This document shows positions 20,092 through 53,530 of a stretch of DNA of 64,000 nucleotides, piece by piece. Both the position numbers and the translations under genes were made by a program. Each line of letters starts with the position of its first letter. The first letter of the stretch is position 1. The notes below the pieces were generated by a model, which had not been told where the DNA came from, searched no databases, and saw only the letters and a list, made by a program, of their open reading frames with translations. The DNA comes from Magallana gigas (Eukaryota): contig NC_088859.1 in the NCBI RefSeq assembly GCF_963853765.1, positions 18,724,001 to 18,788,000 of the forward strand, in the 5' to 3' direction.

Positions 20092-21043
20092 CTAAACTTC
20101 AATTTCTTCATTTTGTTTGTTCGTTGTACATGTCGAACAGCAAATGTTTTTTATGGCTGTAGTGGCACTCTTTAAATGACGTTGAACACGCAGTACCGCT
20201 ATGAAATATATGAAAGGACTCAAAATAGAGTTTATTAACCAGGCAAACTGCGCAGCCACCAGAAGTTTCCCCTCCAAACTTCGTAAACTGTGCAACGACA
20301 AAATATAACAAAGCAGAAACAGAATGGCCGAGGACATGTAGGAAAAGAGAATAACAGAGGTCACCAGAGACATTTTGATGATATTGTTTTCAACGTTACG
20401 TTTGTTAATAGATCGTTGTTCCAGTTTGCGGGTCTTCCGTACGTGGAAAGCCACAATCAGGAGGGTAGGGATGATAATAAGGTAGACTCTAAATGTTACG
20501 ATCACGTAGATGGGTGACTGTATACCAGATTCATATCGAAGCAAGAAGTACAAAACAGCAAAACACGCACTCAGAATCCACAACACTGCTGATGCCCCAA
20601 TTAAGTGTCGCATGGTGATCTTGTTAAACTTGATTGGCTCTGAAACCATGTAACTTCGGAGTCCGAACAGCAATACCACGTGGGCTGCGCTCGAATGAGT
20701 GGCGCCATAAAAGACGATCAGAAACACCTTGCAGGGTAGATCTCCAAGCGTAAAGTGGGTGTCATCTATTCTTGCATGAATGAAATACAGACACAAGTTC
20801 ACGAGATCCGTGAATATTATAGAGCCGATGACATAAAACACCGTGCGATGATATGCCTTGTCGAACACGATTTTAGAGAGCGTGAGCACATTTCCGACAA
20901 TTCCAAAAATAGATATAACGAGGACCATCTGAATATGAAGATCATTTTCGCTATGGAAATAAACTGGTATGTTTTCTGAAAGATCTACAAAACTCCAATC
21001 GGTAAAGGAAGAATTTGTCATGTTGTATGTACTGTTCAGATCA
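20092..21043 (-). CDS. Rhodopsin-like (class A) orphan GPCR 1, exon 2; 321 aa with exon 1
   Basis: Seven hydrophobic segments with GN (TM1), D (TM2), C3.25 exactly 25 residues before R3.50, W4.50 and N..SPFIY. Acceptor ttttcAG|T at 21044 is phase 2. Confidence 0.92.
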
Positions 21044-21845
21044 CTGAAAATAAAGCAGAAATTGATGACATTAATATTTTTAATGAATGTTCATTAGTAA
21101 AACAAAATAAAAAAATTTTTATTTTATGGATGAAAGTTTTTTTTATCTGTTTTTCAATGTTTTGCAGGAGGTTACATAAAAATACTGAATAGTAACATTT
21201 CTGAGAATCATACATTGGAATTGTGAATTACAACTGAGACAAAAATGTGAACTATCTTAAAATGTTTACATCATGTAGGGGAAAATATTCTCAATATGAT
21301 TTTTTTTAAAAATTTTACATGTATATTAACTAACAAAAGTGGTTATATGGCTCTAAAAGTCAAAGTTACATGCATATCTATCCTATAGCACACGTGTAAC
21401 GTTGACTTAATTTTTTACAATCATTTGGAAACTGCGCCTTACAAAAGTGAAATTATGTAGTACATTTTTAAGGTACTACCATTTGTGATTAAAAAAAAAA
21501 AAGCAATATGATATTAATCGTGATGATCATAACTTCTTAAAATCGTGAAACTCCTCCCCCAACTAAAAGTGGGGCCCGAAAGTGAGCCAAAGTTTATCAT
21601 ACAAATGTATAAAATAACCCAATCATGCTAAAAAGTGCAATAAAATCGGAATTAACCTTTTCATACACGCATATCTTACATTGTAAATATTATATCAAAC
21701 TAGAGAAAAAAAACCAAGCATGTATATATTGGTATGAAAAGAAAATAGATATTCAATATCACCCATGCAACAACTTGTTTCCATACCTCGCTGAAGGTGC
21801 AGAGAAAACAAAGAGGGTATGTAAAATAAGTTTCGAGTTTTTCGC

Positions 21846-24121
21846 TTGTTCTGTTCTTTTCTACTTTTAACATATTAGCAGAGGTTTATAAAAAAGACCA
21901 GGGATAGAATACAAGAGAAAAAAATCTACTTACTTATATTGAAGCATGGTAAAGCTGGTATAATGTGTATCAGAACAAATTTCTACTTCACAAATCGTAA
22001 CACTCTATGTCTGTGATGCATATAAACACTGGCAGCTGATGCAAAACGAGATATATCGTATAAGAAAAAAACCTTCTCTGACGTAATCGATTTTAATCTG
22101 ACAGCGCATCATAGATTATTTTCCCCGTTTTAGAATTCAATACCAGACTTCACATCGGAAAAACATCGATTATATTTTTTTTCAACTTACAATATAAATG
22201 TATGACATTTTGATTATCAGCTTATTGATTCTAAACTTAGATATACTACATAGATACCATATTAATTTTCTTGCCTATACATGTAAAACGAGTGCAAATA
22301 ATGAAGAATAACAACTCAGAATTAAAATATACTGATTGTCATTACGTATTAAACCAGCAACATTTTTGTCCTGCAGCTCTTTTATGATATACATTTTTTC
22401 TCGCGTAAATAGTTATCAAGCAGTGTTCATTGGTTTCGCTGTATATAAATGAAAATGTCAGTATGTTAATCTAAAGAGTTCAGATAGCGATAGTTGATTT
22501 GCAATTGAATAATAACACATTAATACGATGAAGGGCACCATGAAGTATTGCTTTTCATAAACTTGCCGAGAATTGGTGGATAATGCCATCAATATTATTT
22601 TCATTGGTCAGTCATTCAATTTTCCTTTTTTATATTAAATATTACGGCTGCAACATATTTACTGTAATTAACAAGAAAATGGAAAATAAGCTTCATGAAC
22701 GAGTCTATCATACTTAATTAGAGAGGTCAAATGGCTGAAGCAATTTTTTTTTAGACTATTTTAATCTCCTTAGAAAGAAAAGCTCTGTACTTCGATGTAT
22801 AAAATGTAAAAAATTATAACATAAAATATTCGAATATTTTCTTTACTAAAATATTACTTACGGCCAAAATTAATCCTCCTTTTCCTTACCCTGGCACAAT
22901 GATGTAGCGGTTCATGTTACATAGAAACCGACAAGTATAGGACATGTACACTTGTGATGTCTGCATGTATTCTAAATGATTCATTTATAGGTCATATCGC
23001 AGATGTATGCAGCTTTATACAACACCATCTAGCAAATATATTAGTACAATGAACACATTTACACCACCAAAACGTGATTCGCGTCTTACTAGCTTATGCT
23101 AGTTGTCCAAAAATATATTAAGTTTGGTAATTCAGCGTTCAAAATTGAGATCAGAAAGATATTTTCACCAAGCCCTTTAAGGATATTGTACTTTGAGGGT
23201 AATATAAAATCGTCTTGGTAGTAAGTAAAGCACAGCACCAATTGTAAATTAATTCGTTAATTGATTGTTGACAAAAACTTATCAAATTGAGTCTCGTTAA
23301 AGCTATGCATGCCCAGATGATTTATTAAGTTTGTTTACAGCTGTTGAATATTTGATAATTCTATGTCACTAGTAATGTAAAGCAATGTAATTGTATTGAA
23401 TCTGGGACCAAATGGTTGATAAACATCTAGCATATGCATGCGTTCAGTGAAAATCAAATGGGAGTGAAAGCAAATCCTATGATACTTTCACCTGCAGGTT
23501 TATAGAAATTAAGAGAATATGCTAATTAAATTGATGGAACCGAGGACGCTAAAGATAATAAACATGAAATCAATGAAGAAGTACATCAAAGACATCTGTG
23601 AGTCACAGAACTAATCATTTATAGGGTAGCCGACATTCCCACCAACGTCCCAAAATGTCAGGTATATTAATGGCAATAAAGGCGCAATGGAAATTATAAA
23701 CCCTTTGAGTTCATACGAAGATGCCATTAAAGACCATCATTTAGAATCCCTTGAAAAAGAAACAAAAAAATTGTCATTCCCCAAGGAATTTGGAAGACCA
23801 TTGGACAGATTACACTGCCAATGCCAGAAGTAGCCCGCTTAAAAATACCAAATGACAAGACGTAATGGCATACAATAGATAACGTTTTTTCTGTTAGCTT
23901 TGACGTCATTATATTCCAAGCAGTTTTGATTGCGAGGTGGGTGTACTTTGTTTTGTAAATCAAAAAACACAAAAACTGTTTAATTTGATTATTGTTGAGC
24001 CCAATGTTCTCGACATACTTAATGCTGCCGATCACTATGTACTTATAAGATTCGCACAATGAAGTTAACTTTATCAATTTTTCCATGGAGAAGGTTTACT
24101 GCTTCATACTTGTGGGTTGTA
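21846..24121. repeat. Segmental duplication block 'GPCR upstream', left copy (paralog about 43920-48750)
   Basis: Collinear similarity, e.g. ggtttataaaaaagaccagggatagaatacaag, cactggcagct, ctctgacgtaatc, agaatcccttgaa and gattcgcac...gttaactttatcaatt. The right copy carries an extra ~2 kb near 46400-48300. Confidence 0.85.
21934..21947 (-). CDS. GPCR 1 first coding micro-exon (14 nt, MLQY-N)
   Basis: ATG CTT CAA TAT AA|GTAAGT; phase 2 joins T GAT CTG AAC in frame; 890-bp intron. Confidence 0.8.
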
Positions 24122-24660
24122 GACGTCACAAATTGATATAAACTGTTTCAAGGATGAATCACATATAGAAGAATTTGGGGGCCCAATAAACAAAAAATCG
24201 TCCAAAATGTGTACCATCCGAGGTATCCCAAACTTTTTACAAGCAATCCACTCTAAAGCTGTGCTAAAGGATTCAAATTTGGAGCACGATATAGAACACC
24301 CCATTGGGAGACACTTGTCATAATAAAACCGGTCTTGAAACTGAATTCCTAGAAGTTCATGGTCATCTGGATGAACGGGTAATATTCGAAATCCTGATGC
24401 AATATCCGTTTTTGCTAGCAAACATTCTCTTCCCATAGTTTTAATAATACTAATTGCATCATCCACAGTTGTATAGAACACTGAACATAAATCGTCTGGT
24501 ATAAAATCATTTATAGAACTGCCCTCCGGATAAGACAAATGATGAATGAAACGAAATTCATTTACCCCTTTTTTAGGAACTAAACCAATTGGCGAACACT
24601 GAAGATTTTTGAAAGGAGGAACAACAAAGGGGCCTGCAATTCCGTTCATGGATATTTCTT
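24104..24660 (-). CDS. Reverse transcriptase fragment of a tyrosine-recombinase retrotransposon (Ngaro-type DIRS)
   Basis: GIAGPF, SPIGLVPKK, FRFIHHLSYP, KTDIASGFR, LPMG and HILDDF motifs. Truncated at about 24122, with no RNase H or YR downstream. Confidence 0.9.
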
Positions 24661-25079
24661 TTTGTAGTGTTGTTTTTTATCTTTACATTAATCTGAGCCG
24701 CTATAGGAGTTGATAACAATTGCTGTTCATCGTCTGAATCTACCTCATCACTATCACTGGAATCTGAACTATCTAAGCCAGATTCACTTTCACCCGAGGA
24801 GGTACCTGATGAGACTGATCGTACACTGTCCCTTTTTCGCTTACGGCCTCTCTGGCGACTGCGACCCCGTTCCTCAGTGGGTGTCTCTTCATTTTTCTCC
24901 TCCTCATTTCTCCTCTCTTCTCTCAAAGCTTGCTGTACGTGCTCTGTTACTGCTGCCACCAGCTGGGGTTGAATCGTCTCCGCCTGATTTTGTGCTGCCT
25001 GTTCTGCGGATCCAACTGCAGCTTCCACGTTGTTCACTCTCCTTCCCCTCGGACGCCTTCCGCCGGATGGGACACTCAT
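24660..25079 (-). CDS. gag-like ORF1 N-terminus of the same element, fused to RT by an internal deletion
   Basis: Basic, then Ser/Asp-rich, then PIAAQINVKIK (resembles the DIRS/Ngaro ORF1 P..x.V..KIK motif). It abuts LQKEISMNGIAGPF in another frame. The ATG is directly preceded by gcattttAG. Confidence 0.6.
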
Positions 25080-25493
25080 CTAAAATGCATTATGTACACA
25101 CTAGTATATTCGAATGCAATTAATAAAAAGCGATATACACCATGTGCCAGACACTTGAAGGAATCAGTATTTAGCGTATAACTTATTATATGTTGCCATA
25201 AATAAACAAATGCATAAACTATTAAAGTTTCTCAAATAATTGCATGTACTTCACCAAGTTCAAATAAAAATGTAATAAACATGCAAACATTAAACTGATC
25301 ATTTGTATCAAAGAAATGCTATCCTATCAATTAGTATGGCATGGCATAACACTTTACTCTGATGTCTTATGAATTCCTGCTTATAGAGGAATTTGCCAGC
25401 GCAAACTATGTATTACGCAATATAAGAACTCTAACATGTATTTTAGAGTCTAAACATTAATTGATTTACAAATCTGGTTTGTTGCATGTTAAT

Positions 25494-25750
25494 TTAACAG
25501 TTATGCCCCAACCATTTAGGGGACATTAATAGCCATGCCCCAACCATTTAGGGGACTTTAACAGTCATGCCCAAACCATTTTGGGGATTTTAACAGTCAT
25601 GCCCCAACCATTTAGGGGACCTTAATTAACAATAATGCCCAAACCATTTAGGGGACTTTAACAATCATGCCCCAACCATTTAGGGGACTTAAACAGTAAT
25701 TCCCCAACCATTTAGGGGACTAACAGTCCTGGTTCAACCATTTAGGGAAC
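25494..25750. repeat. 32-bp minisatellite, about 8 copies (ttaacagtcatgccccaaccatttaggggact)
   Basis: Period of 32 at 25503/25535/25567/25599 and onward; each unit has a CCCC-9nt-GGGG mini-stem. Confidence 0.92.
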
Positions 25751-25912
25751 CGAACCCATTTTGGTGACTTGTTATAGGACAATGTTAAAACATAAATATA
25801 TGCTAGAAGGCCTAACAAATTTAACTGCTTCATTCATTCGTAAACAAACAAATCAGCAACATTATTTACTCTACATCTATAAGCCTCAGTCCATGTACAT
25901 TACATAACCTAA

Positions 25913-26539
25913 CTACCCACCATTGTCTATGGATTTTAGGCAAGACACAATACTGGCCCGCAAATTGTTATAATACTTTATGTTACCCTTGTCATTCAAA
26001 TGGACCCCATCTGGGAGAAAAACCAGCTGCTGGCTCTCTTTAGACCAAAAACCAGTCAGACAAAAGAAAAATGTGCCATCTACATTCATAAGGTAGCTTG
26101 ACATCGTTCGGTTTAATTCGTCCACCCTAGAATTGAACCATGGTGTGTCCACCTTGTAACGTACCGGAAAGGTAGGAGGTAGCCTATACAGCGTTTGTAA
26201 CACTTCCACTTTTTTAACAGATTTTCCATATCTCAGGGTAATTACAAAGTCTACCAGCTCCCTAAATATGTCATTCAGAGATTTATTCCCATCACATACC
26301 GGTAAGTCATTTGATACCCCTCGTATCAAAACAACACTGGTCTGTAGTTGAGTGACGTAATCTAGGCCAAGCGCGCGATTCTGCTGAAGGGATGCTCCTC
26401 TTTTACCCACGAAATGGACAGCAACTTCATCTGTGCTTAAATTAAAGTTATTAGATACACGATGGTCATCACTCCTCGCGATAAACTGTTCCAAACGGCA
26501 GACAAATGAATGTCCAAGAATTATAACACAATGCGGCAT
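25913..26539 (-). CDS. SGNH/GDSL hydrolase, 208 aa, retrotransposon-borne
   Basis: Block I LGHS, block II G, block III GVSND and block V DGVHLN. The ORF is intact and co-oriented with the gag/RT fragments. SGNH ORFs are a known accessory of animal Ngaro elements. Confidence 0.85.
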   Translation of the reverse strand: MPHCVIILGHSFVCRLEQFIARSDDHRVSNNFNLSTDEVAVHFVGKRGASLQQNRALGLDYVTQLQTSVVLIRGVSNDLPVCDGNKSLNDIFRELVDFVITLRYGKSVKKVEVLQTLYRLPPTFPVRYKVDTPWFNSRVDELNRTMSSYLMNVDGTFFFCLTGFWSKESQQLVFLPDGVHLNDKGNIKYYNNLRASIVSCLKSIDNGG

Positions 26540-27254
26540 CTTGTAAACAGAATGCTGGCAGCGGTCTCTGCGGGGAGTAAAAGTTAAAGAGTTCCATCCG
26601 CTTGCGCTTTGTATTCAATGCGATTGCATAAATATACTTACATTAATTGAAGATTAAAGAGCGAAAAGTCAGTTTGTCTGTTGACAGTCACAACAAATAA
26701 TCGACTGGACCGTACAATCAACAATTTTTCCTTAGTAAATTAAAGCATGCTTGTTTGAAATACTAAATGGCGAGTAGTAAACAACTAAATGTATGTTGCT
26801 CAAAATATTCCGGAAACTAAAAAGAAAACCGAATACTTAACAGTTAATGATAATCCGGACAAATAATCAAATAATTTTCTGCAATTATGAAGGCTGGGAT
26901 AGAGTAAAATTTAGATAAAGTATCAGACAATTGCAAAAAAGCCGAATTAACATAGATTGTAACAAATAATTCAAACTCATAAATTTGGAAGCATATTCGA
27001 GGAAATCCAGGACAATTACAAATTCAAACTTTCAAGACCCCGTCTTTCAGTACTCTCAGTACTTTGATTATCGTAAGTGTTCAAGACCCATTTCTCGACG
27101 GAGTTACAAGAGTTAATTTACCGGTTACAAGAGCTAATTTAACGGTTGCAGTCAGCAAATAAGGGGCCGATCCTGTCAGTGGAAATTATTCACGGTCGAT
27201 GTAATTAAGATTAATTATTCAATGATAATTTACACCTATGGTAGCATGGTCTTG

Positions 27255-27450
27255 ATATATGGTATCAACATCTAATGCTGGAATTCCCATGGGTACCAAT
27301 TTAACAGATATTTTTTGTATTCATGTAAAGCAGAATTTGTTCAAAAACTTGTATGAAAAAAAAATAACTCACTTGCTTCTCCCTCATCATTTGATAAATA
27401 TGATTAGAAAACGAGAACTGGATACTCAATTAAGTTACTGTCTTTCCACA
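27255..27450 (+). pseudogene. Penelope-like element RT fragment
   Basis: GIPMGTN-LTDIF resembles PLE GIPMGTNCAPLLADIFL with a deletion; a YD.K..-like remnant lies downstream. Confidence 0.5.
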
Positions 27451-27480
27451 AATTTATTTAGAAATTAAATTTGTTGTTGT

Positions 27481-27740
27481 TTTTCGCTTCTATTTGATCA
27501 CGTGTGCTACACTTATAATGGGGAAAATAGTTCTTGAATGACACTTGAAAGAAACTTGTATAAATTATTTTAAAGTATATTAATTATTTCCTTCTACTTT
27601 GGATTACAGCCACGACAGATAGGTCACTGATCTACGTCAGTAGAGCTGAAAGAGCAGACATAGTCACACCAAGCGAGTGTCATTCAAGAACTATTTTCCC
27701 CATTATAAGTGTAGCACACGTGATCAAATAGAAGCGAAAA
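27481..27740. repeat. Perfect 65-bp inverted repeat with a 130-bp spacer (fold-back element)
   Basis: 27481-27545 is the exact reverse complement of 27676-27740. Confidence 0.93.
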
Positions 27741-27769
27741 CAGACGTGTCATTACCTTATCAATAAAGA

Positions 27770-28960
27770 AGGAAACGGTGCAAAAATTCAATTTCGTGTT
27801 GAATAGATCCAAGAGGGTGAAAAAAACCCCACTAAATTCTTTTTCGGGACTAAAAAAACATCATCAATCAAACAATGTGATAAATGAAATCGAAAGAGAT
27901 AAAAAAGAAATTTGCTCTACCTCCTGTGATATTTCAGGGGAAATGTGCAAATTTTACAAAACGTTATACAATTCTAACTCGATACCCGGAAACGAAGTAA
28001 ATTCATATCTCGGCGACTGTGAAATAAAAGCCTTAATTAACATGAAATGATAGAAAACTTGTGATAGTTTTCCAACACTTTGAGAATGTAAAGATGCAGT
28101 GATGCATTTAAAAACAAATGAATTCCCAGGTCTAGATGGAATACCAAATGAATTTTATCAATTGTTTTGGAAAGATTTTTCTACCATGTTCTATATAGTG
28201 TAGTGAAACAAACATACATAAATATCGTAATGGGCTACATACAGAAACACAATCATTTCATAAAAGTACAGACCAATAAGCTTAACAAATACGGACTATT
28301 AAAAATAGCATGTTATACAAAATATTGGATGAAAGTCAATCCTGACATTGGAAGACTGTTTGTCTCGGAAGAAAAAAAGTTCCACTTTTCGGAAAATGCT
28401 CTATAAAAATTACTCAAGCAATCCCTAAATTAATATATTTATACACAATTCTAGAACTACCGGCAGAAAACTTTATCAAAAATATGAAAAAAATTAATTT
28501 TTATCTTCATATGGAACAACCATTATAGGAAAAAAAGGAATACTGTGATAGGGGAAATAAAAGACGGATGAATAGGTTTAATAGATATTGAATCAAAATT
28601 AGGAGCTTTAAAAAAACAGCATGGGTACCTAAATGTAGATTATTAGAAACTAAACATGTTTTAAATTACTTAGTGGACAGTTTTTTCAAAGAATTAAATA
28701 CATGTATAGACATTCGTTTCATCTCAATCACACCAGACACAACTATTTTAAAAATCGATAATGTTAAAAAAAGTGCCCACCTCTACAAGGCAGTCTTTTC
28801 GTGTTTTTTGTATGTGCAAAGCAAGGTCTTAATTTAAATCAACAGAATCTACTGAATAAATTGTTGATACAATTTGGTCTAATAGCTTTTTTACGTCCAA
28901 GGGCAAAACTGTTTGTTTTAAAACTAAAATTAAGTTTCAATAAAAGGGGTTACATGCAGT
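27770..28960 (+). pseudogene. Decayed Tx1/L1-clade LINE ORF2 with the RT core deleted
   Basis: GEKNPTKFFFGLKK, KTNEFPGLDGIPNEFYQLFWK, then LFGKC..AIPKLIY...IGEIKDG*IGLIDIESKL and IWSNSF..KGKT; many frameshifts. Confidence 0.8.
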
Positions 28961-30455
28961 CCCTGTTCTCCCCTTCATACAGGATTGCATAAGTATTTCG
29001 GCTTGAAGATGATTCCACGAGTGACGAAATTTTGAAAGGACATAGTCGATAAGGTTGAAAGTATTGGGGTGGCCATTTGAAACTGAGGCAATTTGACTGC
29101 GGTCAACTCACCTGCAATAACTTCTAGTTGACGAAATCGATTTACCCAAAAGGGATTGGTGAACATTATAAAACCTCCACGTCCATAAGAAGATGCCATG
29201 TAAACACCTTCGATAAAAATCCCTTGTAAAAGACGCAAATATTTGTGCCGGTCATTGTTCAAAAAGTGAAGAATTGGAAAACCTCGGACGGATAACACTT
29301 CCTCTTGCCTTTATCTTTATAGGTTTATATTGTTATCAACTTTTCATAAAAATAGGTTCACTTCTAAAGAGGGATATTTTTTACCAATGCAACTGTATGT
29401 TACATATAAATAAACTAGTGTGAATTACTCAATTAATACAAGAAGAATGTTTGTGTTGGATATCTACTGAGTCTTATGTCAAAATCAACACTCTGTGTTT
29501 TAACACAAGTTTAAGACACATTTCCTGACCGAGTTGCAAGAGATGATTTAACGCTTTAACTTCCAGTCTGCAAATCACGTGATCCAGTGCAAATTCATAC
29601 GATGACCATTCATGGTCGATGGAATTATTATTAAATTATCCAAATACAATTAACATTGATTGTACCATGGTCAAAATACCGTATGTTCGGTTATTTTTGC
29701 GATTATCTAATTTTCGCTTCTTTTTCCTGATATCTTTCAAATTGCAAATAATTCAATACGCAGTAACTGTATCCTTTATCATTTTTATAAGAAACTTTTT
29801 AAATCGCAAGAAATGAAAGATGTAAATTAAAAATGTTACAAATTTTACGCCATTTTCGCAAATTTTGTGTCTGATATAAAAAAACAACAACCTGATAAAC
29901 AGTATCCAATTCTATTCACGGGAATGTACTGTCAAGAGTATTATGCATGGTCAAATTAATGAAGACTCATGATCAATGTCTTAATCGATTCTGTATCCAT
30001 TTAATATACTAGTATTCCACTGTATAACAATTTCGTATACTCTTGTACAAAATATATTTTCTAAACAGAGATTACATTGAAAACAATGAAAAAGACAATT
30101 AAAACAGTATGTTTTAGTATCTGATATGCATGAAAATGTAGTAACTGTTAGCTCGTAAGTAATATTTGTATAGTACTATTTACATTAAAATCAAACTTTG
30201 CAAACAAGTGCTGGGTTTAAACCTTGATCTAGCTTATATAAAGGAGAGTTATCAGTAATAAAAAAAATATATAGAACGTTACTAGTATGCAGTAATTGGC
30301 AGAAGTTATTGATCATCACATTTTTTTTACTATCATGCATATGTGTACAACGTCACATTTCTACCAATATCAATTTCATAGGTCCCATATTGGGTTCACT
30401 CTGTTTATAAAGGAAGATAAAAATATCAGCATTGTTCTACAAATACAAAACAACA

Positions 30456-41902: not shown

Positions 41903-43244
41903 GCCTCATCAGTTCAGTTTGATGTTATGACAGGGTCTATGATTGTCAAAGTTCTGAGCCCTGAAATAGAAAGATTTAAAAACTAGAAATATTGTTACTT
42001 TTCATATGTAATGTAAAACAACATATAAATATTAATACACCAGTCAGGTCAATAAAGCCTAGATAAAACATTGATTCCTATTCCAGTCTGAAAAGAAAGA
42101 ATCAGTAGATAGGGAAAGTTGATGGTTGGGTGGATTGGTCTATGTTAGTAAAATTGAAGGTAGGGCCAATTGTGGAACCCTATTAGACACTATTAAATCA
42201 ATGTAATCTTAAATGAATTAATCAAAGAAGATTTGAACTTCTGCAATGGGATCTCAACCCATGACCATTTATGATACACTGAATGGTTTGGAATAGGGAA
42301 AAACAACAGGGGATACTTGCCAAACCATTACATAAATTAAATAGATCTTCAAATACCAGCAACAAATATAATTGTTAAGGGTTGGGGTGTAAATTGACCA
42401 ATGAATTATAAAAATATGGGATAAAAGATAACCCCCGGGCATTTGCATACCAAAGTAATCGCCACGTCTTATCATGAGCTGTATCAAAGAATTTACATGT
42501 ACCCGTACATTTAGGGGTGGGGATCTCTACTGGAACACAGCGAATTACCAGTATATATTGAGGGGGTGGAAATGACCTAATCATTATTTTAACCTTTGCA
42601 ATTATTTTATAAAATTATATTATTGGTCAAATATTGTTAAAAAGAAATTTCTAAAAGAGTGAAAGTGTTTTGATTATAATATACTTTTATCCACATCAAT
42701 ACCGACAGGTGTTCCATACCCCCAAGTTTAGTGAGGGGAAAAACCCCACCTTATTTTTACCCCACAATGAAAACAGCTGTAAAAAAAACCTACAATGTGG
42801 AACTTTTCATTCAAGATTGACTGGTGTTTTGTTTCAATTGAACATATATTAGTTTCTAATATACATGTACATGTAGGGATAAATCATTTTTCAATGTATC
42901 TGAAAACAAAGGGCAGTGTAAGGCTACTGCAGTACATTTATTCAAATCAAGATATGAATATAAGTTATAAGAACGCGCCTTTTATAATTAGACTTGTAAA
43001 TGAACAGATGAAAGCATACATTCGTAAAGTATGCAGTTATATTTGAGTGTCCGGATAATTGCCAAAATCAATCGCTTTGATGTTCTAAAAATAGATTCGG
43101 GGAAAACCAGTATGATCACCGATACATGTAGTGAAATATGCCAATAAAAACGAAAACTTCACTGCAGTTGTTAGTTAACTTATATCACTGTTTGAAAAAG
43201 CTTATTTCATTCAACATGTATAGCGTGGATATGCAATAATATAC

Positions 43245-43464
43245 CTGTATATAATGTGGGGTATGGCTTCCTTCGCTGTCCGCGGCTGGGTTGACAGGTT
43301 GTTTGTCGGCCATCACTAAGTTTTAAACTTTGCAGATGTCTTGTTATGTCTCTGCAACAATTACAAAGGGTCACTGGAGTTGTTTATTCTGGATCGGCTT
43401 TATACAGACTTGTGAAACTGTTTGCGTAGTGTCCCGAAACCGTGTAGTCTTCTCGAACTTCCAT
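43245..43464 (-). pseudogene. Putative first exon of the TTAA element's gene (one internal stop)
   Basis: ATG at 43464: MEVREDYTVSGHYANSFTSLYKADPE*TTPVTLCNCCRDITRHLQSL..., with donor G|GT at 43244. Confidence 0.4.
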
Positions 43465-44013
43465 TTTCGCGCACTAGCGTATGTAGCAACGAGACGCCAT
43501 CTAGCGACGATATTGTGAATCAACAAGGAAAGACAACCAGATTTCACTCGAATTTGCTAATTTTAACGGCAATTTTAACTCAAAACTCAAACTTTTCAAC
43601 ACTTTTTAAAATTGGAAATCATTGTGCTGAGTGAGTTTAGTTACTATTTATAATCAATTTTTCTCGTAAGGTTTGCTGTTTTTAGTAATTTGATAAAAAT
43701 ATATGCTATTTTACTAAGACTTGCACGGCGTCAAAATTGAGCGCCTTGTCAATATATCGGGCCCGTATTCAAAAACGAAACGGAATATTTCAGAATAATT
43801 TGGCATATACATTCTAAACATCCCAGTTTCTTGCTGGGTAAAATTTCGTTTTATTTTGCGTCTTATCACTTATCACAAAATTTCGATATTGCCTGATTCT
43901 TACGTGAACCTGTACTTAATTGTTCTGTTCCTTTCTAATCTTTACATATAATTAGAGGTTTATAAAAAAAAAAAGACCAGGGATAGAATACAAGAAAAAA
44001 AATGTCTACTTAC

Positions 44014-44027
44014 CCATATTGTAGCAT
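44014..44027 (-). CDS. GPCR 2 first coding micro-exon (14 nt, MLQY-G)
   Basis: ATG CTA CAA TAT GG|GTAAGT, paralogous to 21934-21947; phase 2; the intron 32833-44013 is 11,181 bp. Confidence 0.75.
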
Positions 44028-47000
44028 GATATAGCTGGTATATGTATATCAGGCCAAAGGTCTACTTCACCTATTGTAACACTCTATGTTTTTAGAGCAC
44101 ACACACTGGCAGCTAATGCAAAACGAGATATCACGGGAAACGTTCTCTGACGTAATCTATTTTCATCTGAAAGCGTAGAAATCATTTGCGCTGTTTCAGC
44201 ATTCAAAATCAGATAATCCTCTATCTCAATCTGCAGTGTAGAGCGAAAACGTCTATAATTATTTCATTAACGATTTATAAAAGAATGGATACGTGTTGCT
44301 TCTATATGAGTGTGCTCATATTTTTCTATAAGATTTTACATCGGAAAAACATCGTCAGCAATTTTTTGCAATTGAAATTTATGACGTTTTGATAATAAGT
44401 TCATTGATTCTAAATTTACAGATACATAATAAATCCATCACTAATTTCCCTGCATGTACATGGTAACGAGTGCGTCATGTTTATGCGAATTATAAATAAA
44501 TGAAAAATATAACCTCCAGATATAAAAATCACTTACATTTTTATCATGCAACTCTTAATCTGCGTGAAAATCTTGGTTTTTCTCATTTGAATAGTTACCA
44601 AGCAATGTCTTTTGGTCTCACTGTATATAAATGAGAATGTCAGTAAGAGTTAATATAGTTTATTTGCAATGAAATAATAACACATTACTGCGATAAAGGT
44701 CACCAAGAAATAAATGACTTCATTGATTTTCATAAACTCGCTGAGAATGTAAATTATGTAGAATGATGCTATAATTATCATTTACATTGGTGAATTATTC
44801 AGTCTGCATAGTTTTCTTTTAGATATCAAATATCACGGCAGCAAAATGCTTAAATAAATGGAATTTAAAGGAAAATGGAAGCTAATCTCCATGAACAAGT
44901 CAGTCATATTGAAGAGTGGCCGACGGTTGTGGCTAATTTTAAGACCATTTTAATCTTCTAAAAAAGAAGAGCCCTGTACATCGATGCATGAAAATGCTGA
45001 AAATTCAAAGTTAAAATATTTGAATGTTTTCTTCACTGAATAATCATTTACAGCCTAAAATAATCATAAAAGAATTTTTACAGTAGATATGATTAATTTT
45101 TTACCATCTAGCGTTCGTTACCGTGTCTGGCACAGTGATATAACGGTTCAAATATATAACAACCGACAACAATAGGACAAGTACATTTGTAATGTCTGCA
45201 TATACTTTAAATGATTCATTATTAGATCGTATCGTATGCAGCGTCAAGTCTTGCATCTAGCAAACATATTAGTACACTGAACATATTTATACCACTGCAA
45301 CATGATTAGCGTCTTACTGTCTTATACTAGTTATCCAACAATATATTCAGTTTGGTACTTTTACGTTCAAAATTGAGACCAGTATGATATTTACCAAGCC
45401 CGGATATTGTACTTTGCCCTTAGAAAAAAATCGTTAATTGATTATTAAAAAAAAAAAAGCTAACGTATTGAGCCTCGTATATGTATACCCGGATGATTTT
45501 TATGCTGAAAGTTCGATATTTCAATTTCACCAGTAATGTAATACAATGTAATGTAATGTAATCCTAATGTATACAGGACCCTGAATGTTTGGAAAACGTC
45601 TATCATATGTATGCTTCAGAAAAATTTAAAAGAGAGAAAATTCTATAATACTTTCAGTTGCAGGTGTTTTGATTTAAGGAATACCGGTAATAAAAATATC
45701 TTAGTACATTTAATGGAATCGAAGATGAACATGAAACCAATAAAGGGGTACATCAAGGAACTCTGTGTGGCACAAAATTAATCATTCATTTTGTGGCCGA
45801 CCTCCATACCAACGCCATAAAGTCAGCTATATTTATGACACCCATTTTAGTCGAAATATGTGCAGAAAGAGAACCTTTAAAGTTAAAAATTTCCCTCAAA
45901 ATTTATACTTCTTAAATAAAACGAAAGAACTTATGATCTCATTTCGCAGAAGCACGAGGTCTCTTACCAAATCATGGAGGGTGAAGATATTGAACGATTA
46001 AACAAAACAAATTACATGTATTGTACGTATTCATTAGCGACGTCCTTAAATGGGATGTGATTGGGAAAAACCTCTAAACGACTTTTTTGACCTTCGTAAA
46101 TTAAATCATGCAAATGAAAAAGAATTGGTTCGAGTTTATAAAGCACAAGCGAGAACAATCTGCGAGTACGCATGCCAAAGGAGTCACCTCACCTGCCAAA
46201 ATATCTAATTGACAATATCAAATCCATCGCAAAATAGTGTTATGGAAATTATAAAACTTTTGCGTCCTTATGAAGATGTCATTAAAGACCTTTATCTAGA
46301 ATCCCTTGAAGAAAACACTCACAAAATCTTTCATTGTCATTCTCTAAGGTTTTGGAAAATCTCTAGGACAGATTAAACTGCCTTTGATTTGCCGAGAAAG
46401 TAAACAAGCAGTATTATAAGTTGATTAATTTATAGCTCTCTAATATTCAACAATCTAAAAAAAATAAATAAAACGTTTTAGCAGTCAGAGTTAGATTGCA
46501 ATTCTTTTTTTATATAGATTGATTGATTTTAAATATTCCTTATAAAATGATTTAAAAATCTTCTGGTACTTATACTTAAAAATAATATCAGTATCTAGGT
46601 TCCAAAAACACATCCCGAAACAGTTTCTATCATCATCATATGGCACATGTATTTCTAAGGTGTATTTAGATATTTGCAAGCAGGTTTCCTGGTTTAACCA
46701 TACTGATAGTAATAATACTTACTTGATCATCAGATACTAGTATCGGTCATTTTATATAGATTATATCAGAAAATATCATTATTATAGATGTCAGCAGATC
46801 TTGCTCTGAGTATATTACTTATTAGACCTGGTTTACGTTTCTTTAATGTGCATTCATCCCGATTATGTTTCAGTATACTAGTAACTAGAAAAAAAAACCT
46901 GTACAAAATATTATAATTCAAGATTTTAAGGAAAGGATGCAACGTATTTGAAAATAACAGCAAACTTATTTTACAATAAAAATAAAGTTAATCAATCGGG

Positions 47001-48505
47001 ATGTATATTGGTGTACTGATTACTAGAATGACATTTTATGCATGTTCAGCTTGCAAATGAAAAAAAACTAAGTAATGTAAAAAGTTATATTTTAAGAAAA
47101 CTTTACCCAATTGAGCTCAGTAAACAAAAATTATATGAGTCATACAGAATTATAACCTGTATTTTATTTTATTAGATCTATTTATGAAATGTCGACGTCT
47201 AACACACCCCTTTCATTATCAACATTTGTCAAAGTTTGACCATAGCCACCTTCATAAACAGACATGTTATCCAAATTGATAGAAATTGGAAATCATTGAA
47301 AAGGTATCACAAATCTTTTTACGAATTTAGTTGCACATTCATGAATCTCAAGACCATTTGAATATCTAATTCAACTAAATAGATTTAATAGGAAACTGGG
47401 GCGAAATAACCCATCTGTTGCTGTACTCTGATAAAAAATGATATATTTTTATCAAACTAAGCTGCTATTTGAACTCCAACAAACAGCTGGCATATCGAAG
47501 GTCTTCCGTTTCCAACGAAATACCTTAGAAGCGAATTTTAAAGAAAGGATATATCCCCCCACACTTTTTTTGTCCAGAGTATTTCTCAAAGATGACTTGG
47601 CAGATTTTTCTGAAATTTTTATAATGTAAGTGGTAAACAATAAAATTCCTCTGGCGTTTCTTGTTCATTTTCTTTAAAATTTGCTTCTGTTTGTCCGTTT
47701 CCGGTACCAAGTCAAAAACGTTGTTCCCTCGAGATCTCATCTTCGCTTGCCAAGCGTTTTCGGTCCACTCTGTTCCCAACATGGCTTGTGAGGAGAGTGC
47801 GGATCAGAAACCCTTCACTTGGGAAGATGTCGAGATCTTAGAGATGAACTTGAACATCCAAACTGTGTGGGTTATTAGACATATGTATGTAGAAGTGTTA
47901 AAAGTATATTGTTTGATTCGTCATAACTTCTGGTCGGTACATCAAGTACTTGAAAAAACTTATATGAATGATAGACATTTGATTGAAGATGTATTCAGCT
48001 GGTTTTATTTTGTCGACCGTCATTTCCGGTTCCCTTCGGCAGGGTTCAAACAAATCAAGGTGTTAATAGGTTTAACTGTTTTTTGGGGTTTTTTTGTTAT
48101 CCTGATAAACAATTATGTTCACTTATATACACGAGGATAATGTACAAGAAATACATAGAATCGAAACTGATATTCACCGATATCTCACCAGAAACGGCAA
48201 AGAATTGAACAACCGAACTTTGTAGAGTGATAGCCCTATGTATGAAACTGTGTTCAAACTAATTTGTTTAATTTGTCATAACCTCCTGTCGTCGAAGGAA
48301 ACTCAGAAATTGATTTTTGTTTCAATTTTTCTTTTACTTTGAAATTTACCTTTACATTTTCCTTTTATTTTTTTTTTTACATGAAAAAAGTATTTTAATA
48401 TAGAAAACTGCATGTACGTATCTGGGAACGGAAGACTTTGTTTATATGACAACAAGAGTCTAGTTTCTCATCTTTTCGTGTGTGTATGTATGTGGGGAGC
48501 AATTC

Positions 48506-48647
48506 NNNNNNNNNNNNNNNNNNNNNNNNNNNNNNNNNNNNNNNNNNNNNNNNNNNNNNNNNNNNNNNNNNNNNNNNNNNNNNNNNNNNNNNNNNNNNNN
48601 NNNNNNNNNNNNNNNNNNNNNNNNNNNNNNNNNNNNNNNNNNNNNNN
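48506..48647. other. Assembly gap (142 N)
   Basis: Run of N. Confidence 1.
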
Positions 48648-49427
48648 TTTGCGGCTGGGAACAATATATACTTGTATGATTCGCACGATGATGTTAACTT
48701 TATCAATTCTGCCATGAAAAAGGTATACTGCTGCATACTTGTGAGCTGTGATAATATTATTGATGCTCGCTCTTAAAAGTGGCAATGTCAATGGCAAGCG
48801 AATGTTATATATTATTGAAACTCTATAGTATACAATACTCAATTAACCCCAAAAAGTCTGTTTGTGTTGGATATCTCCCGAGTGTTTTATGTCTTTTCCC
48901 CGCTCTTCTTGTGTCAAAATTAACACTCTGTGTTTTAACACGTGTTTAAGACACCATTTCCTGACCGAGTTACAAAAGATTATTCAACGGTTGTAGTCAA
49001 GTCAGTACAAATTCATTCAATGACAATGTATGGTCGATGGAATTATGGTTGAATTATGCGATTACAATTAACATCGATAGTACCATGGTCAAGATACTAG
49101 CATCTAATTACATTCATGAAAATTCACGGTCAATGGCATTATGTATGGTTAAATAAACTAATGAAAAGTCATAGTCACTGATTTTAATTATTCTGTATCG
49201 ATTTTGTTTTCTATTGTATAACAGCGTGGTGTAATTTTGTACAAAATATTATTTATTTTCAAACAGATTTTATAATGAAGAGAGTGAAAAGAGAAGTACT
49301 CTTTCGAAGCTGATATACATGAAAATGGTAGTAATTGTTAGCCCTGTAAGTAATATATGTATCGTATACAATAAATCAAAATATACAAAAAAGTGTTGTG
49401 ATTAAATCTTGAACTAGCTTGATATGC

Positions 49428-49733
49428 AACAAGAGATGTTTGTGAAACACTTATGCCCCCCTCCCTTGGAAACATCCACAAAGAAAATGAACGTAAACTG
49501 CAAATAACTGGATTTTTCTATGTCCAATGGCCATAACTCTGTCGAAAATTGCTCGATCGTACCCAATATCGAACTTGACCTAGATGTTATCATTATAAAT
49601 CTGTATACCAATTTTATTTCAATATGTTCATCCTCTGCGAAGAAAATGAACCGAAACTGTTGGTGGACCGACCGACCGACAGACAGCAGCAAAGCAATAT
49701 GCCATCCCTTCTTCGAAGGTGGGGGCATAAAAA
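49428..49733 (+). mobile_element. Oyster 'pearl'/HINE-type non-autonomous Helentron with one Cg170-like satellite monomer
   Basis: aacaagagatgtttgtgaaac start, sub-TIR ttatgcccc/ggggcataa, (GACC)/(GACA) microsatellite and 3' hairpin; empty site in the paralog near 30235. The family name is from recognition. Confidence 0.8.
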
Positions 49734-49908
49734 TGAGTTATCAGTTCAGCTATCGAAGATGTGGATTTTTACAACTTTGGCAAGAATATCATTTCTTTCT
49801 TTCGTTACACAGGGGCCACGCCCGTTTTGACATTAATTTCAATGCTATGGTTACTAATACATTGAAATTAATGTCAAAACGGGCATGGTTCCAGTTTTTT
49901 TTTTATAG

Positions 49909-50037
49909 TAGCAAATCGTAAATGCAGAAATTGGCAGAAATATTGATCGTCAAAAATACATTTTTATCTGTTATAATAGCAAATCGTAAATGCAGAAATT
50001 GGCAGAAATATTGATCGTCAAAAATACATTTTTATCA
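49909..50037. repeat. 68-bp tandem duplication (2 copies)
   Basis: tagcaaatcgtaaatgcagaaattggcagaaatattgatcgtcaaaaatacatttttatc at 49909 and 49977. Confidence 0.9.
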
Positions 50038-50079
50038 TGCATACATATGTACAACGTCACATCACTATACCCATAACAA

Positions 50080-50425
50080 TTCATATCTCCCACTTCGGAT
50101 TCACACTTACTAAAAGTTTTAAAAGATAACCATGATAAACACAATAATAATTCATCATATGTTCAGACAAACAATCAATTATAATCAAGTTTACACTAAT
50201 CTTGTATTTCCGAATTCCTCCGATGATCAGAAAAATAATGTACATCTAACACTTCATATCTCCCACTTCGGATTCACACTTACTAAAAGTTTTAAAAGAT
50301 AACCATGATAAACACAATAATAATTCATCATATGTTCAGACAAACAATCAATTATAATCAAGTTTACACTAATCTTGTATTTCCGAATTCCTCCGATGAT
50401 CAGAAAAATAATGTACATCTAACAC
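50080..50425. repeat. Exact 173-bp tandem duplication (2 copies)
   Basis: The ttcatatctcccacttcgg... unit starts at 50080 and again at 50253. Confidence 0.92.
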
Positions 50426-51328
50426 TTCGGAAGGTTGGCATGTCGTTTTGTTTTTAATGGGAGATAGGGATACTTGCATTTTTTCATTAATGGGGAAATA
50501 AAGATATCAGCATGATTTACAAAAACAAAACATATATTGCAGGTTTTCTTAATAAAATGATATTTCTTTATACCTACATCTATTACATAATCTGTAAAAG
50601 TGCAATGCGTCATAAAAATATTAATCTTATTATAGATCTACAATACTCGGTATTTCATTAAAACATTCGAACATTCATTAAAATATTGAATAATTCACAG
50701 CAACAAAGAAAATTACGTCAGCTTCCACTTCATGCGGTAGATTTCATAACCATTAGGCTATTTCACACCCATCATTTTGTTTTATTATTCCTATTGTTAA
50801 AAAAAAATGTTTACGTATGAACTGCAAAAAATTCAACATACTCTTAGGGCTTTTGACAGGAGACGAATTTTGACTCGTCCATTTATAAAGGATTTGTAAA
50901 ATAGTAATTAAAAAAAAAAAGTGTTGTAATTATAATTATTATATATGTTACTGGTCATTGTATGGATCGTAAACGAAGTTCAAAAGGTCCTGGGACGGGC
51001 TCACAGATTACGTGTAGGGGCCCTATACCGGAAGTTTGTGCAGGAATCTATCAAATCTTGGTGGACGAGTTTTATACTATATATAGTACCGTAATCATGA
51101 ATAATATTTGATATTAAAGGCCATTAGATAGTTTAAAAGGTTTTTACACTTGTACCTTTAAAAAAATGTATTAAGTATTACACGTTTCTTTATTTTCAAT
51201 ATACTGTACCCATTTTAAGTCGCTTAATTAAATTATACGTTGTTGCAACATAAGTGTGTTCTTTTATTGTTCTTTTCATACTAATTGTTCTTTTTTAAAA
51301 TCAAAACTGGGTTGAAATTATTCAGGTT

Positions 51329-52229
51329 TCATAGTCTGTCTTGTATTGCTGTTGAGAAGCGCTTAAAACAGTTACGAGCGCGCAGTGCCGCGATGAAATA
51401 TATAAAAGGGCTCAAAATAGAGTTTAATAACCATGCGAACTGCGCAGCCACCAGAAAGTTTCTTTCCAAGTTACGTAAACTGTGCAAAGACAAAATATAA
51501 CACAACAGAAACAGAACGGCCGAGGACATATAGGCAAAGAGAATGACAGATGTCACCAGAGACATTTTGATCAGAGTGGTTTCAACGTTGTGCTTGCTCA
51601 AAGAGCGCCTTTTGAGTCTATGCATTTTCTTCACGTGGAAAGTTAAAATCAGAAGGGTAGGGATGACTATTAGGTAGACCCGGAAAGTTATGATTACGTA
51701 GGTCGAAGACTGTATGCCAGACTGGTAACGAAGCAAGAAGTACAAAACGGCAAAACAGGCACTCAGAATCCACAAAAGTGCTGATGCACCAAATACCTGT
51801 CGTTTGGTGATCTCGTTAAACTTGATTGGCTCTGAAACCATGTAACTTCGGAGTCCGAACAACAATATCACGTGGGCTGCACTCGAATGAGTGGCACCAT
51901 AAAAGACAATCAAAAACACCGTGCATGGTACATTTTCCAGCTGAAAGTTCATATTCTCTGTGATCGCATGAGCCAAATACAGACACAAGTTCACGAGATC
52001 CGTGAATATTATAGAGCCGATAACATAAAACACTGTGCGATGATATGCCTTGTCGAACACGATTTTGGAGAGCGTGAGAACATTTCCGAGTATTCCAAAA
52101 ATAGATATAAGAACAACAAAAATGAGATGGTTGTCTTCCAGATAAACTGGAACATCGTTTCGTACACTCATCAGAACAGAAGTATCATTTAAGAAAAACA
52201 TTGCCTTCTTTGAAGTGCTGTTGTGCTCA
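51329..52229 (-). CDS. Class A orphan GPCR 3, exon 2; 304 aa with exon 1
   Basis: 7TM paralog; acceptor ttacAG|T at 52230, phase 2. Confidence 0.92.
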
Positions 52230-52427
52230 CTGTAATATAAAAAAAAGACATACACTACATTTTAAAAAAAGAAGAATATTTTTGTGAATTTGCATGTCGA
52301 CTTACATGGAGGACAATATACATGCGCGGATTTTTTTTCAGGGGATGGGGGTGGTCGGCGTGTCTGGTCCCCATTTTGGGAAATTTAGATTTCTTAAATT
52401 TACTTATACATTGAATGCTTATTTTTT

Positions 52428-52914
52428 GGATGCCGTCGGTCCTTGACACACCGAGCGGTGCAGACAAATTGAATACTGCGCCAACGCACGGTATTATATA
52501 AATAGTGCCTGTTTGGGAGGATCACAGTTGAAATTGACACCCCGAGGAAACCATTGTCAACCGATGCGAAGCGGAGGTTGAGACAATGGTTTTCGAGGGG
52601 TGTCAATTTCAACTGTGATCCTCCCAAACAGGCACTATTTATTTTATTTTGCTGAATGTCTTAATTTTAGAGAAATTTTCACTGCTTTTATTTAGAAATG
52701 ACGCGAATTCTACGGTGAACCGTACGCGCATAATTTACGCGCATGTAACAATTCGTTGTGTTACCCGTTGCTAAGTGTGTTGCTAACGCTGAGGGTAAAA
52801 GAATTAACAGATTATCGACTGCGTCTAAACCAATCAGATTTCAGTATTTAACATGAAAGTATAATAAGATAATTTAACTGCACCGCTTGGTGTGTCAAAG
52901 GACCGACGACATCC
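52428..52914. mobile_element. Small MITE (36-37-bp TIRs) split by an inserted hairpin element
   Basis: ggatgccgtcggtccttgacacaccgagcggtgcag versus ctgcaccgcttggtgtgtcaaaggaccgacgacatcc. Confidence 0.75.
52500..52640. mobile_element. Palindromic end of a probable non-autonomous Crypton-like element (element extends to about 52866)
   Basis: Perfect 44-bp arms (52500-52543 / 52597-52640) around a cgaagcggaggtt core, a core I associate with Crypton derivatives. Confidence 0.55.
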
Positions 52915-53516
52915 AAAAATTAACATTTAAAGCGTATATCTATATTTCCATACTGATGTCTATTTGTATGAAATATTTTTGATCGCCGCTATAAAGCCAA
53001 TTTCACGCCCTCAGTCAAGGATATGAAACATACATGGAATAGCCATATTAACATGTTATTTAGTTAGCTTCCGCGACAAATTAAAAATATTATTTTATAC
53101 TTTTTGGATTATTAACTATTAGATTATACTTTTTGGGAAAACATGTAATTTTGCAATATACCCGCCGCCTTTATACATTGTACCCGATTCGTGCACTGAT
53201 TCGGATTTTTTTTCCGGTCGTGGAATGTTGGCTGAAGGATAATTTTGTTTGCCAATGGTAGTGATTAAATACATATTGTAGTCAACTTTATTACTTGAAT
53301 TTGATGCGTGTTTTATTTTTATTTTCATGGTTCACGCTATCTCCACCAAAACGTCCTTAATCTATCATCGGAAAACAATATATGTAGAACCCACAAATCG
53401 TAACATTAAGGCCTTCTGTTTTCGAGTTTATCGCTTTTTCGTCAACTTTAAATCATCTGTTGAACTTTTTTTTTACCATTTTGTGATATCAGAAGTTGGG
53501 TGAAAAAAAACCTTAC

Positions 53517-53530
53517 CTGTATTCATACAT
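53517..53530 (-). CDS. GPCR 3 first coding micro-exon (14 nt, MYEY-S)
   Basis: ATG TAT GAA TAC AG|GTAAGG; same length and phase as the other two micro-exons; 1287-bp intron. Confidence 0.72.

Follow-up and report, generated by a model that had tools for sequence, protein, structure and literature searches.

The middle member of a tandem array of three divergent, probably class A G-protein-coupled receptor (GPCR) genes in the oyster Magallana gigas is a mosaic of its two neighbours. The array lies in a 64,000-nucleotide (nt) stretch of contig NC_088859.1 (assembly GCF_963853765.1, positions 18,724,001 to 18,788,000 of the forward strand), hereafter the window, whose own coordinates are used throughout. 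We name the genes G1, G2 and G3. The promoter and 5' part of G2 are of G1 type; its 3' part, together with the intergenic sequence downstream, is of G3 type. Judging from these sequences, G2 very probably arose by one unequal crossover in a G3-G1 pair, as a preliminary description of the window had proposed. We found no paper on this locus in the literature.

The three paralogous open reading frames (ORFs) all lie on the minus strand, at 20092-21021 (G1), 31935-32945 (G2) and 51329-52255 (G3); along the direction of transcription the array reads G3 - spacer - G2 - spacer - G1. RefSeq holds models of all three genes in both M. gigas and Crassostrea angulata. Those of M. gigas are XP_011418534.3 for G1 (P0023 in our collection), XP_019920235.3 for G2 (P0015) and XP_011418533.3 for G3 (P0019), and they served as the full-length models, with exon 2 as a separate query. 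In the gene table of the M. gigas record OY970751.1, which is the same genome, the genes follow in the same order, at spacings that map exactly onto the window coordinates. The order G3 - (G1 5'/G3 3') - G1, found here on the minus strand and in RefSeq alike, is the one announced beforehand as the product of a single crossover.

We aligned G2 with G1 and G3 and scored the informative sites (n = 178), at which it agrees with one neighbour only. Left of the breakpoint, 84 sites are G1-like and 31 G3-like; right of it, the counts are 10 and 53. The maximum chi-square (MaxChi) of 53.4 falls between 32232 and 32230 (permutation p < 5e-5), and the result holds with third codon positions alone and with the conserved core alone. 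A main switch at about 32230-32250 had been noticed, and the three-way alignment and breakpoint test that had been recommended yield a single significant optimum there. In P0015 the junction falls between K205 and M206, where the fifth transmembrane helix (TM5) ends on the cytoplasmic side, as delimited in a low-confidence model. It is in register between the paralogs: no base is inserted or deleted, the frame is kept and the ORF is intact. In a topology scan, comparing common with separate topologies under unlinked branches, the likelihood gain has a modest peak at alignment columns 600-648, with 10.5-12.7 log-likelihood units vs 4-5.5 elsewhere. This comparison replaced a GARD-like scan by the corrected Akaike information criterion, dropped because unequal rates in the N-terminus and the transmembrane core confound it; its best split was at column 184.

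The motifs first read as signs of a hybrid are all present in the protein alignment: SENIPVYF.SENDL, FIHARI, LG.LPC, FNKIT and RYESG on the G1 side, KMHRLKRRS.S.HNVET.LIK, LRNLERNFL, AALRA.NCFK and IQD.L on the G3 side. FNKIT and RYESG also occur outside G1 and G2, in the transcript L002 and in Ostrea, and are thus probably ancestral and not diagnostic.

The likeness to each neighbour continues well beyond the coding sequence (CDS). Homology between G2 and G1 extends upstream of exon 2 over the intron islands, a coding micro-exon and the promoter, all located by sequence and by self-BLAST blocks, in agreement with the preliminary description. Two conserved islands in the G2 intron, 34451-34560 and 40619-40771, pair with 21488-21596 and 21684-21842 at G1. 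The G2 micro-exon (44027-44014) reads ATGCTACAATATGG and is followed by gtaagt; that of G1 (21947-21934) reads ATGCTTCAATATAA, followed by gtaagt as well. Exon 1 of the G1 transcript aligns to its G2 homologue at 84%, and the promoter-proximal block before the G2 micro-exon matches its counterpart in G1.

On the other side, homology between G2 and G3 is unbroken past the stop codon, through the 3' untranslated region (UTR) and along the whole downstream spacer, colinear for ~10 kb; the 3' UTR and flank of G1 are unrelated. A 38-nt deletion in the C-terminal tail, which shifts the frame into an early stop (G2 ends in IQDKL), is common to G2, G3 and two G3-like transcripts, L002 and L004. G1 and the transcript L003 are without this deletion and keep a long tail that ends like those of the outgroups; in G1 this ancestral type ends in ICCSTCTTNKQNEEIEV. 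The 3' UTR of G2 and G3 still shows remnants of the long tail.

A test on a triplet cannot separate recombination from uneven rates, so relatives were added to the alignment: L001, the G2 locus of C. angulata; L010, an ENA contig that bears a second G2 ortholog; the G3-like transcripts L002-L004 from other samples; and outgroups from Ostrea and Saccostrea (L007, L008). L010 is 94.8% identical to G2 and carries G2-specific changes. Protein and DNA trees of the 5' part both unite G1 and G2 in a clade (support 100/100), and a grouping of G2 with the G3 type is rejected by the approximately unbiased (AU) test (p 0.021 and 0.012). Synonymous divergence (dS) there is 0.28 [0.18-0.40] for G1-G2, 0.53 for G2-G3 and 0.52 for G1-G3. 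In the 3' part the ordering flips, with 0.61 for G1-G2, 0.23 [0.11-0.38] for G2-G3 and 0.61 for G1-G3. Under 400 codon bootstraps the ordering is kept in 99.8% of replicates for the 5' part and in 400/400 for the 3' part; the ratio of non-synonymous to synonymous divergence (dN/dS) is alike in the two parts. The halves of G2 group with different neighbours, as the hybrid reading required: the 5' half in trees, the 3' half in dS, in relative rates (below), in the tail deletion and in the flank. That G1 and not G2 might be the mosaic is ruled out, given that G2-G3 divergence differs between the halves (0.53 vs 0.23) and that both G2 flanks switch.

The two spacers are copies of one ancestral intergenic region, a point that the preliminary description had right. 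S1 (between G2 and G1) and S2 (between G3 and G2) share 10 colinear blocks, 21488-31333 against 34451-51011, with 3142 aligned nt at ~80% identity. Their Kimura two-parameter distance (K2P) of 0.24 is about the age of both halves of G2 (dS 0.28 and 0.23), and the parents are ~2x as far apart. Spacers as old as both halves are what a single unequal crossover predicts. The order G3 - S - (G1 5'/G3 3') - S - G1 is in turn the anti-Lepore duplication product of one such event in a G3-S-G1 pair. The same gene order and the same duplicated spacer would also follow from a non-homologous tandem duplication of the segment from mid-G3 to mid-G1, replication-based or by end joining and with no meiotic crossing-over; sequence alone cannot reveal the enzymes that made the junction. 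We judge this extremely unlikely, as end joining would hardly leave a junction perfectly in register, with no indel and the frame kept.

The array also bears traces of gene conversion. The G3-identical patch that had been noticed near 32300-32327 is real (30 nt, 32298-32327), but it is no part of the crossover. Within it, G1 differs at 6 sites, which form six consecutive G3-like sites in G2, and L010 carries the G1 state at 5 of the 6. Because this independent ortholog is without the patch, we take it for a later G3-to-G2 conversion in the gigas/angulata lineage. The pattern of a short donor tract, in which a gene's own sequence resumes on both sides, fits this patch only: at the main switch, neither G3 likeness downstream nor G1 likeness upstream reverts over ~10 kb each way. 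Short-tract conversion would, it follows, still be going on in the array. A further observation concerns L002 (Logan SRR29413221), a G3-like transcript with G1/G2-type states through TM4-TM5 (codon-alignment columns ~460-650; NKITIRH, RYESG, VIVTF...VAFHVRK) and G3-type ends. Possibly this is a second mosaic within the family; alternatively, L002 may have kept ancestral states.

That short tracts do occur (the patch at 32298-32327 and clustered differences at 32586-32661 and 31940-31982), and that G1 and G3 are 93-97% identical over TM1 and the first intracellular loop (ICL1), lends something to a history of duplication followed by conversion. G2 would then be a full copy of one neighbour, one half of which was overwritten by a long interlocus tract from the other. 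We hold this to be unlikely: the switch in affinity runs beyond the gene, to the promoter on the 5' side and over the whole spacer on the 3' side, and two events of the same age would be needed (dS 0.28 and 0.23; spacer K 0.24), which is less parsimonious. A tract abutting the duplication junction would be indistinguishable from a crossover at 32230.

Several observations, given in this and the next three paragraphs, weigh against a single crossover. The weak point of the case is the tree of the 3' coding part. This segment (297 columns) is a polytomy in protein and DNA trees alike, and a G1+G2 clade is 6-8 log-likelihood units worse there without being rejected by the AU test (p 0.12-0.20 for DNA, 0.24 for protein); adding the second G2 ortholog L010 did not make the test significant. 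Many of the 3' sites shared by G2 and G3 are changes specific to G1, free of grouping information, and the 3' branch of G1 is long (0.24-0.25). The separate trees that had been called for thus make G2 the sister of G1 in the 5' half and leave the 3' half as a polytomy. All this would suit a history free of recombination, in which G1 and G2 are sisters throughout and the 3' third of G1 and the 5' part of G3 evolved faster. Such a history is very unlikely. The excess is also synonymous (dS 0.61 vs 0.23, in 400/400 replicates, at similar dN/dS, 0.38 vs 0.35), and a clock is rejected under that topology (p 4e-6 to 9e-12). Relative-rate tests find the chimeric topology clock-like in both halves, with 29 vs 31 and 10 vs 15 unique changes; G1 and G2 as sisters in the 3' part would require 53 vs 15 changes (p 4e-6), or 58 vs 6 with L010 included (p 9e-12; p 0.02 at synonymous third positions). 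Nor does G1 share the 38-nt tail deletion, the 3' UTR or the ~10 kb of G3-type flank. On the sequences at hand we consider the choice between recombination and uneven rates settled by the flip in dS, the relative rates, the deletion and the 3' UTR and flank.

A second set of points concerns what came after the exchange. At 32586-32661, G2 of gigas and angulata differs from G1, G3 and L010 at 8 sites, half of them ancestral-like, which goes beyond one crossover alone. The 3' part of L010 is also closer to G3 (dS 0.095) than the age of a single event predicts. Later conversion has, on this account, blurred both ages and the exact junction.

The third point is an assembly gap between G3 and G2. 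Together with the high heterozygosity of oyster genomes it raises the case of an artefact, with divergent haplotypes or a misjoined scaffold laid in tandem and no real three-gene array, which to us is in the highest degree improbable. S1 is gap-free, and its blocks flank the gap of S2 in the same order and strand (23687-23819 with 46242-46382, and 24030-24120 with 48659-48749, where the second block of S2 begins just 12 nt past the gap); being colinear on both sides, they support the scaffold join. The paralogous copies differ by 14-16% in coding sequence and ~20% in spacers, vs 1-4% for allelic and sister-species copies. Each spacer has its own transposon insertions, and separate spliced transcripts exist for G1 and for G3. 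The independent chromosome assembly of C. angulata (CM046785.1) shows the same order and orientation, with G3 at 36748982-36752149, G2 at 36779953-36781557 and flanks 96-99% identical to the window; among the RefSeq proteins of this 56-Mb contig, G1 of C. angulata follows as the next accession, placed by accession order and not by coordinates. The argument made earlier against collapsed haplotypes, from spacer divergence and copy-specific insertions, is thereby joined by a second assembly.

Neither a two-gene haplotype nor the reciprocal product was seen. A search with the G1-type 3' third returned no protein with a G3 front and a G1 back, and no G1-type gene outside gigas and angulata, in a collection with few oyster genomes; for that reason the absence says little. 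Lastly, the C. angulata annotation gives G2 another predicted first exon, and no G2 transcript occurs among the Logan-derived cluster members, where G1 and G3 have several.

From the above, the following course of events can be proposed. The starting point would have been a tandem, same-strand pair of class A GPCR genes in which G1 lay downstream of G3, diverged by about half of their present synonymous distance. At meiosis, G1 on one chromatid would have mispaired with G3 on the other. A single homologous crossover, in register, would then have fallen in exon 2, within the codons for the cytoplasmic end of TM5 (~32216-32236), and left the array G3 - spacer - G2 - spacer - G1. G2 would have received from G1 its promoter, micro-exon, intron, N-terminus and TM1-TM5, and from G3 the extension of TM5, the third intracellular loop (ICL3), TM6-TM7, the truncated C-terminal tail, the 3' UTR and the downstream spacer. 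The crossover would be ~10x older than the split of gigas and angulata. Afterwards, transposons would have enlarged the spacers independently, and short conversion tracts would have carried stretches of a few tens of bases from one gene of the array to another. We infer meiotic non-allelic homologous recombination (NAHR) as the mechanism, and a continued function of G2, from the sequences compared.

The gene structures underlying this comparison are collected in the table. Exon and intron limits of G1 and G3 were set by spliced Logan transcripts, L005 and L006, respectively. L005 equals G1 exon 1 at 100% over its positions 1-80, and its positions 81-1681 match 21043-19436 at 98.8%; L006 equals G3 exon 1 at 100% over its positions 3-88 and matches exon 2 at 97.5% (52234-51152). 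For G2, the RefSeq model P0015 starts with MLQYG, spans 12,093 nt and uses the micro-exon at 44027-44014 with the 11.2-kb intron. This micro-exon is identical in C. angulata. The evidence supports this M. gigas model, with its MLQYG start and 11-kb first intron, over the first exon annotated in C. angulata.

Table. Features of the GPCR array, listed along the direction of transcription (window coordinates; TM, transmembrane helix; ICL and ECL, intracellular and extracellular loop).
Feature	Positions	Strand	Description
G3 gene	51329-53602	-	two exons
G3 exon 1	53517-53602	-	5' UTR and 14-nt coding micro-exon; ATG at 53530, MYEY plus 2 nt
G3 intron	52230-53516	-	phase 2
G3 exon 2	51329-52229	-	all CDS except the first 14 nt; short tail ending in IQDRL; from ORF and RefSeq P0019
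Spacer S2 (G3-G2)	32946-51328	-	second copy of the ancestral spacer; longer through its own insertions
S2-specific inserts	34561-40618, 40772-43919, 46383-48658
Assembly gap (N)	48506-48647		in S2, intergenic, upstream of G2 exon 1 and outside every exon and reading frame
G2 gene	31935-44089	-	two exons
G2 exon 1	44014-44089	-	5' UTR and 14-nt coding micro-exon; ATG at 44027, MLQY plus 2 nt; GT donor intact at 44013
G2 intron 1	32833-44013	-	11.2 kb; counterpart of the 890-nt G1 intron, enlarged by copy-specific insertions; from self-BLAST blocks
G2 exon 2, G1-derived part	32231-32832	-	N-terminus and TM1-TM5, residues 6-205 of P0015
G3-to-G2 conversion patch (secondary)	32298-32327	-	30 nt, the same as in G3, within the part derived from G1
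Crossover interval	32216-32236	-	MaxChi optimum between 32232 and 32230; conservative bounds from sites polarised with relatives
G2 exon 2, G3-derived part	31935-32230	-	cytoplasmic extension of TM5, ICL3, TM6, ECL3, TM7, helix 8, truncated tail ending in IQDKL
Spacer S1 (G2-G1)	21022-31934	-	one copy of the ancestral spacer between G3 and G1; its 3' end contains the promoter, exon 1 and intron of G1
S1-specific retroelement insertion	24121-29384	-	reverse-transcriptase fragment, acidic gag-like ORF, GDSL-type ORF
G1 gene	~19436-22013	-	two exons
G1 exon 1	21934-22013	-	5' UTR and 14-nt coding micro-exon; ATG at 21947, MLQY plus 2 nt
G1 intron	21044-21933	-	from spliced Logan transcripts
G1 exon 2	CDS 20092-21043, 3' UTR to at least 19436	-	from ORF and RefSeq P0023

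The three proteins appear, by sequence, to be divergent class A GPCRs of an orphan family apparently restricted to oysters. Pfam 7tm_1 recognises G3 at 37.8 bits (curated cut-off 30.5); at E <= 0.01 it does not match G1, G2 or the complete G2 model P0015. A family profile aligns over TM1-TM4 with solved class A structures (GPR183, 5-HT1A/1D, GPR84) at E of 4e-6 to 1e-3, matches that are weak and carry no orthology. In the alignment, the canonical E/DRY and NPxxY motifs are missing from all family members: the end of TM3 reads G-L-R-S/C-Y, and TM7 has S-P-F-I-Y. RefSeq names are mutually inconsistent (GPR183-like, S1PR2-like, PAR2-like, 5-HT1A-like). Protein searches, including one with G2 exon 2, found relatives in oysters only, in Crassostrea, Saccostrea and Ostrea. 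Tandem arrays of the family seem general in oysters, to judge from two further loci: in Saccostrea echinata another member, P0013 (L008:20755-21163), lies ~10 kb downstream of P0011, and in Ostrea edulis a 7tm_1 gene (L007:15564-16643) adjoins P0012.

An AlphaFold2 model of G2, built from a 16-sequence alignment, has a mean predicted local distance difference test score (pLDDT) of 44.6 and served for approximate helix limits only. At this low confidence, the helices span residues 36-62, 66-92, 106-136 (broken at 116-122), 146-173, 179-211, 216-252 and 256-288, with a further one at 291-302. Set on this frame, G2 is of G1 type in its N-terminus, TM1-TM5 and the first two extracellular loops (ECL1, ECL2), and of G3 type in the extension of TM5, ICL3, TM6, ECL3, TM7, helix 8 and the truncated tail. 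Most differences between G1 and G3 fall within the N-terminus and ECL1, which face outwards, or within ICL3 and the tail, which face inwards. The preliminary description had the exchange join the ligand-facing half of one parent to the coupling half of the other. So clean a split does not hold: TM6, ECL3 and TM7 also face the ligand, yet they come from the G3 side. The wider idea of rewired signalling appears reasonable. More specifically, G2 could be a selectively maintained domain swap, taking a G1-type cue, with G3-type coupling or desensitisation, under a G1-type promoter; we regard this as possible and rather doubtful.

The G2 ORF is open in gigas, in angulata and in the ENA ortholog, with the ATG, GT donor and AG acceptor present. 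With frame and splice signals intact in three lineages, G2 probably still works as a receptor. Compared with each parent it has a dN/dS of 0.35-0.42, and 17 of the 46 G2-specific changes are synonymous-like, which points to constraint on the gene.

Other features were met along the array. A motif resembling the cAMP response element (CRE-like), TTACGTCA, is conserved in the promoter block shared by G1 and G2 (22060-22100 and 44130-44170), ~60-90 nt upstream of the known transcript start. Intron 1 of G2 contains a 4.3-kb element (35601-39906) with ~100-nt terminal inverted repeats (35600-35701 vs 39769-39866, 86% identical) and is bordered by CACCGG-like duplicated flanks. In C. angulata the orthologous site is uninterrupted and lacks the element, which looks like a recent DNA-transposon insertion. 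In S2 there are young tandem duplications, a 173-nt unit x2.1 (99% identical) and a 68-nt unit x2 (98%), at 50074-50428 and 49903-50036. The retroelement of S1 has weak Pfam matches to RVT_1 and Lipase_GDSL_2. It is absent from S2, where just 40 nt separate its flanks (48749 and 48789), and present in C. angulata (L001 matches at 98-99%). Its acidic ORF (24573-25079) is fused to TM1-TM4 of G1 (20092-21021) in a 247-residue M. gigas entry of UniRef, P0014, probably an artefact of gene modelling in which a transposon ORF was spliced onto the receptor. In the second G2 ortholog, a full-length Ty3/gypsy-type retrotransposon (L010:1007-5992; a 1661-residue pol with reverse transcriptase, RNase H and integrase) stands <=~0.8 kb upstream of the exon-2 acceptor; the corresponding site of the window is free of it. 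On either side of the array lie a B-box/NHL (TRIM-like) protein gene at 56474-58069 and an ankyrin-fused cGAS-like receptor gene at 6013-8745, both on the minus strand.

The locus amounts to a natural experiment: both parents adjoin the hybrid, whose junction is mapped to ~20 nt at the TM5/ICL3 boundary, its age is measured in three independent ways, and it is intact in at least three lineages. It offers a convenient system in which to ask whether a swap of ICL3, TM6-7 and C-terminal tail alters G-protein or arrestin coupling in lophotrochozoan orphan GPCRs. It also shows unequal crossover and gene conversion jointly shaping tandem receptor arrays, which are common in bivalve genomes. Should the domain-swap reading prove true, G2 would be a fixed case, predating speciation about ten-fold, of signalling rewired by one crossover. 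The mechanism itself is not new: this is a clean new example of a textbook route by which genes are made.

The closest likeness is to anti-Lepore haemoglobins, in which beta/delta globin fusion genes are retained between the two normal genes. There, as here, one crossover between adjacent paralogs leaves the order parent A - hybrid - parent B, with an in-register junction and a duplicated spacer. The globin hybrids occur as rare variants in humans and date back between a few generations and a few thousand years, whereas the oyster hybrid is fixed, old (dS ~0.25, ~10x the gigas/angulata divergence) and present in at least two oyster taxa, and it encodes a receptor, not a globin.

Hybrids of the human red/green cone opsin genes OPN1LW and OPN1MW resemble G2 in another respect, being class A GPCR hybrids that come from unequal homologous recombination in a head-to-tail array. 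Blocks of transmembrane helices are exchanged in this way, and receptor properties change with them. The opsin parents are ~98% identical, and their exchanges lie in introns; the parents of G2 were far more diverged, and their exchange fell inside a coding exon, at the TM5/ICL3 boundary. Hybrid opsin genes made by unequal crossing-over are mentioned in two papers (PMC6488792 and PMC3449122).

According to the review of Katju 2012 (PMC3449122), one duplication that partly covers two adjacent genes instantly makes a chimeric duplicate, and unequal crossing-over is NAHR between nearby paralogs. The oyster locus fits both statements. The same source describes both routes, unequal crossover and duplication with conversion, as known. 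Most catalogued chimeric duplicates, for example Sdic of Drosophila, fuse unrelated genes. Both donors of G2 are paralogs, and its product is therefore a full-length, colinear receptor.

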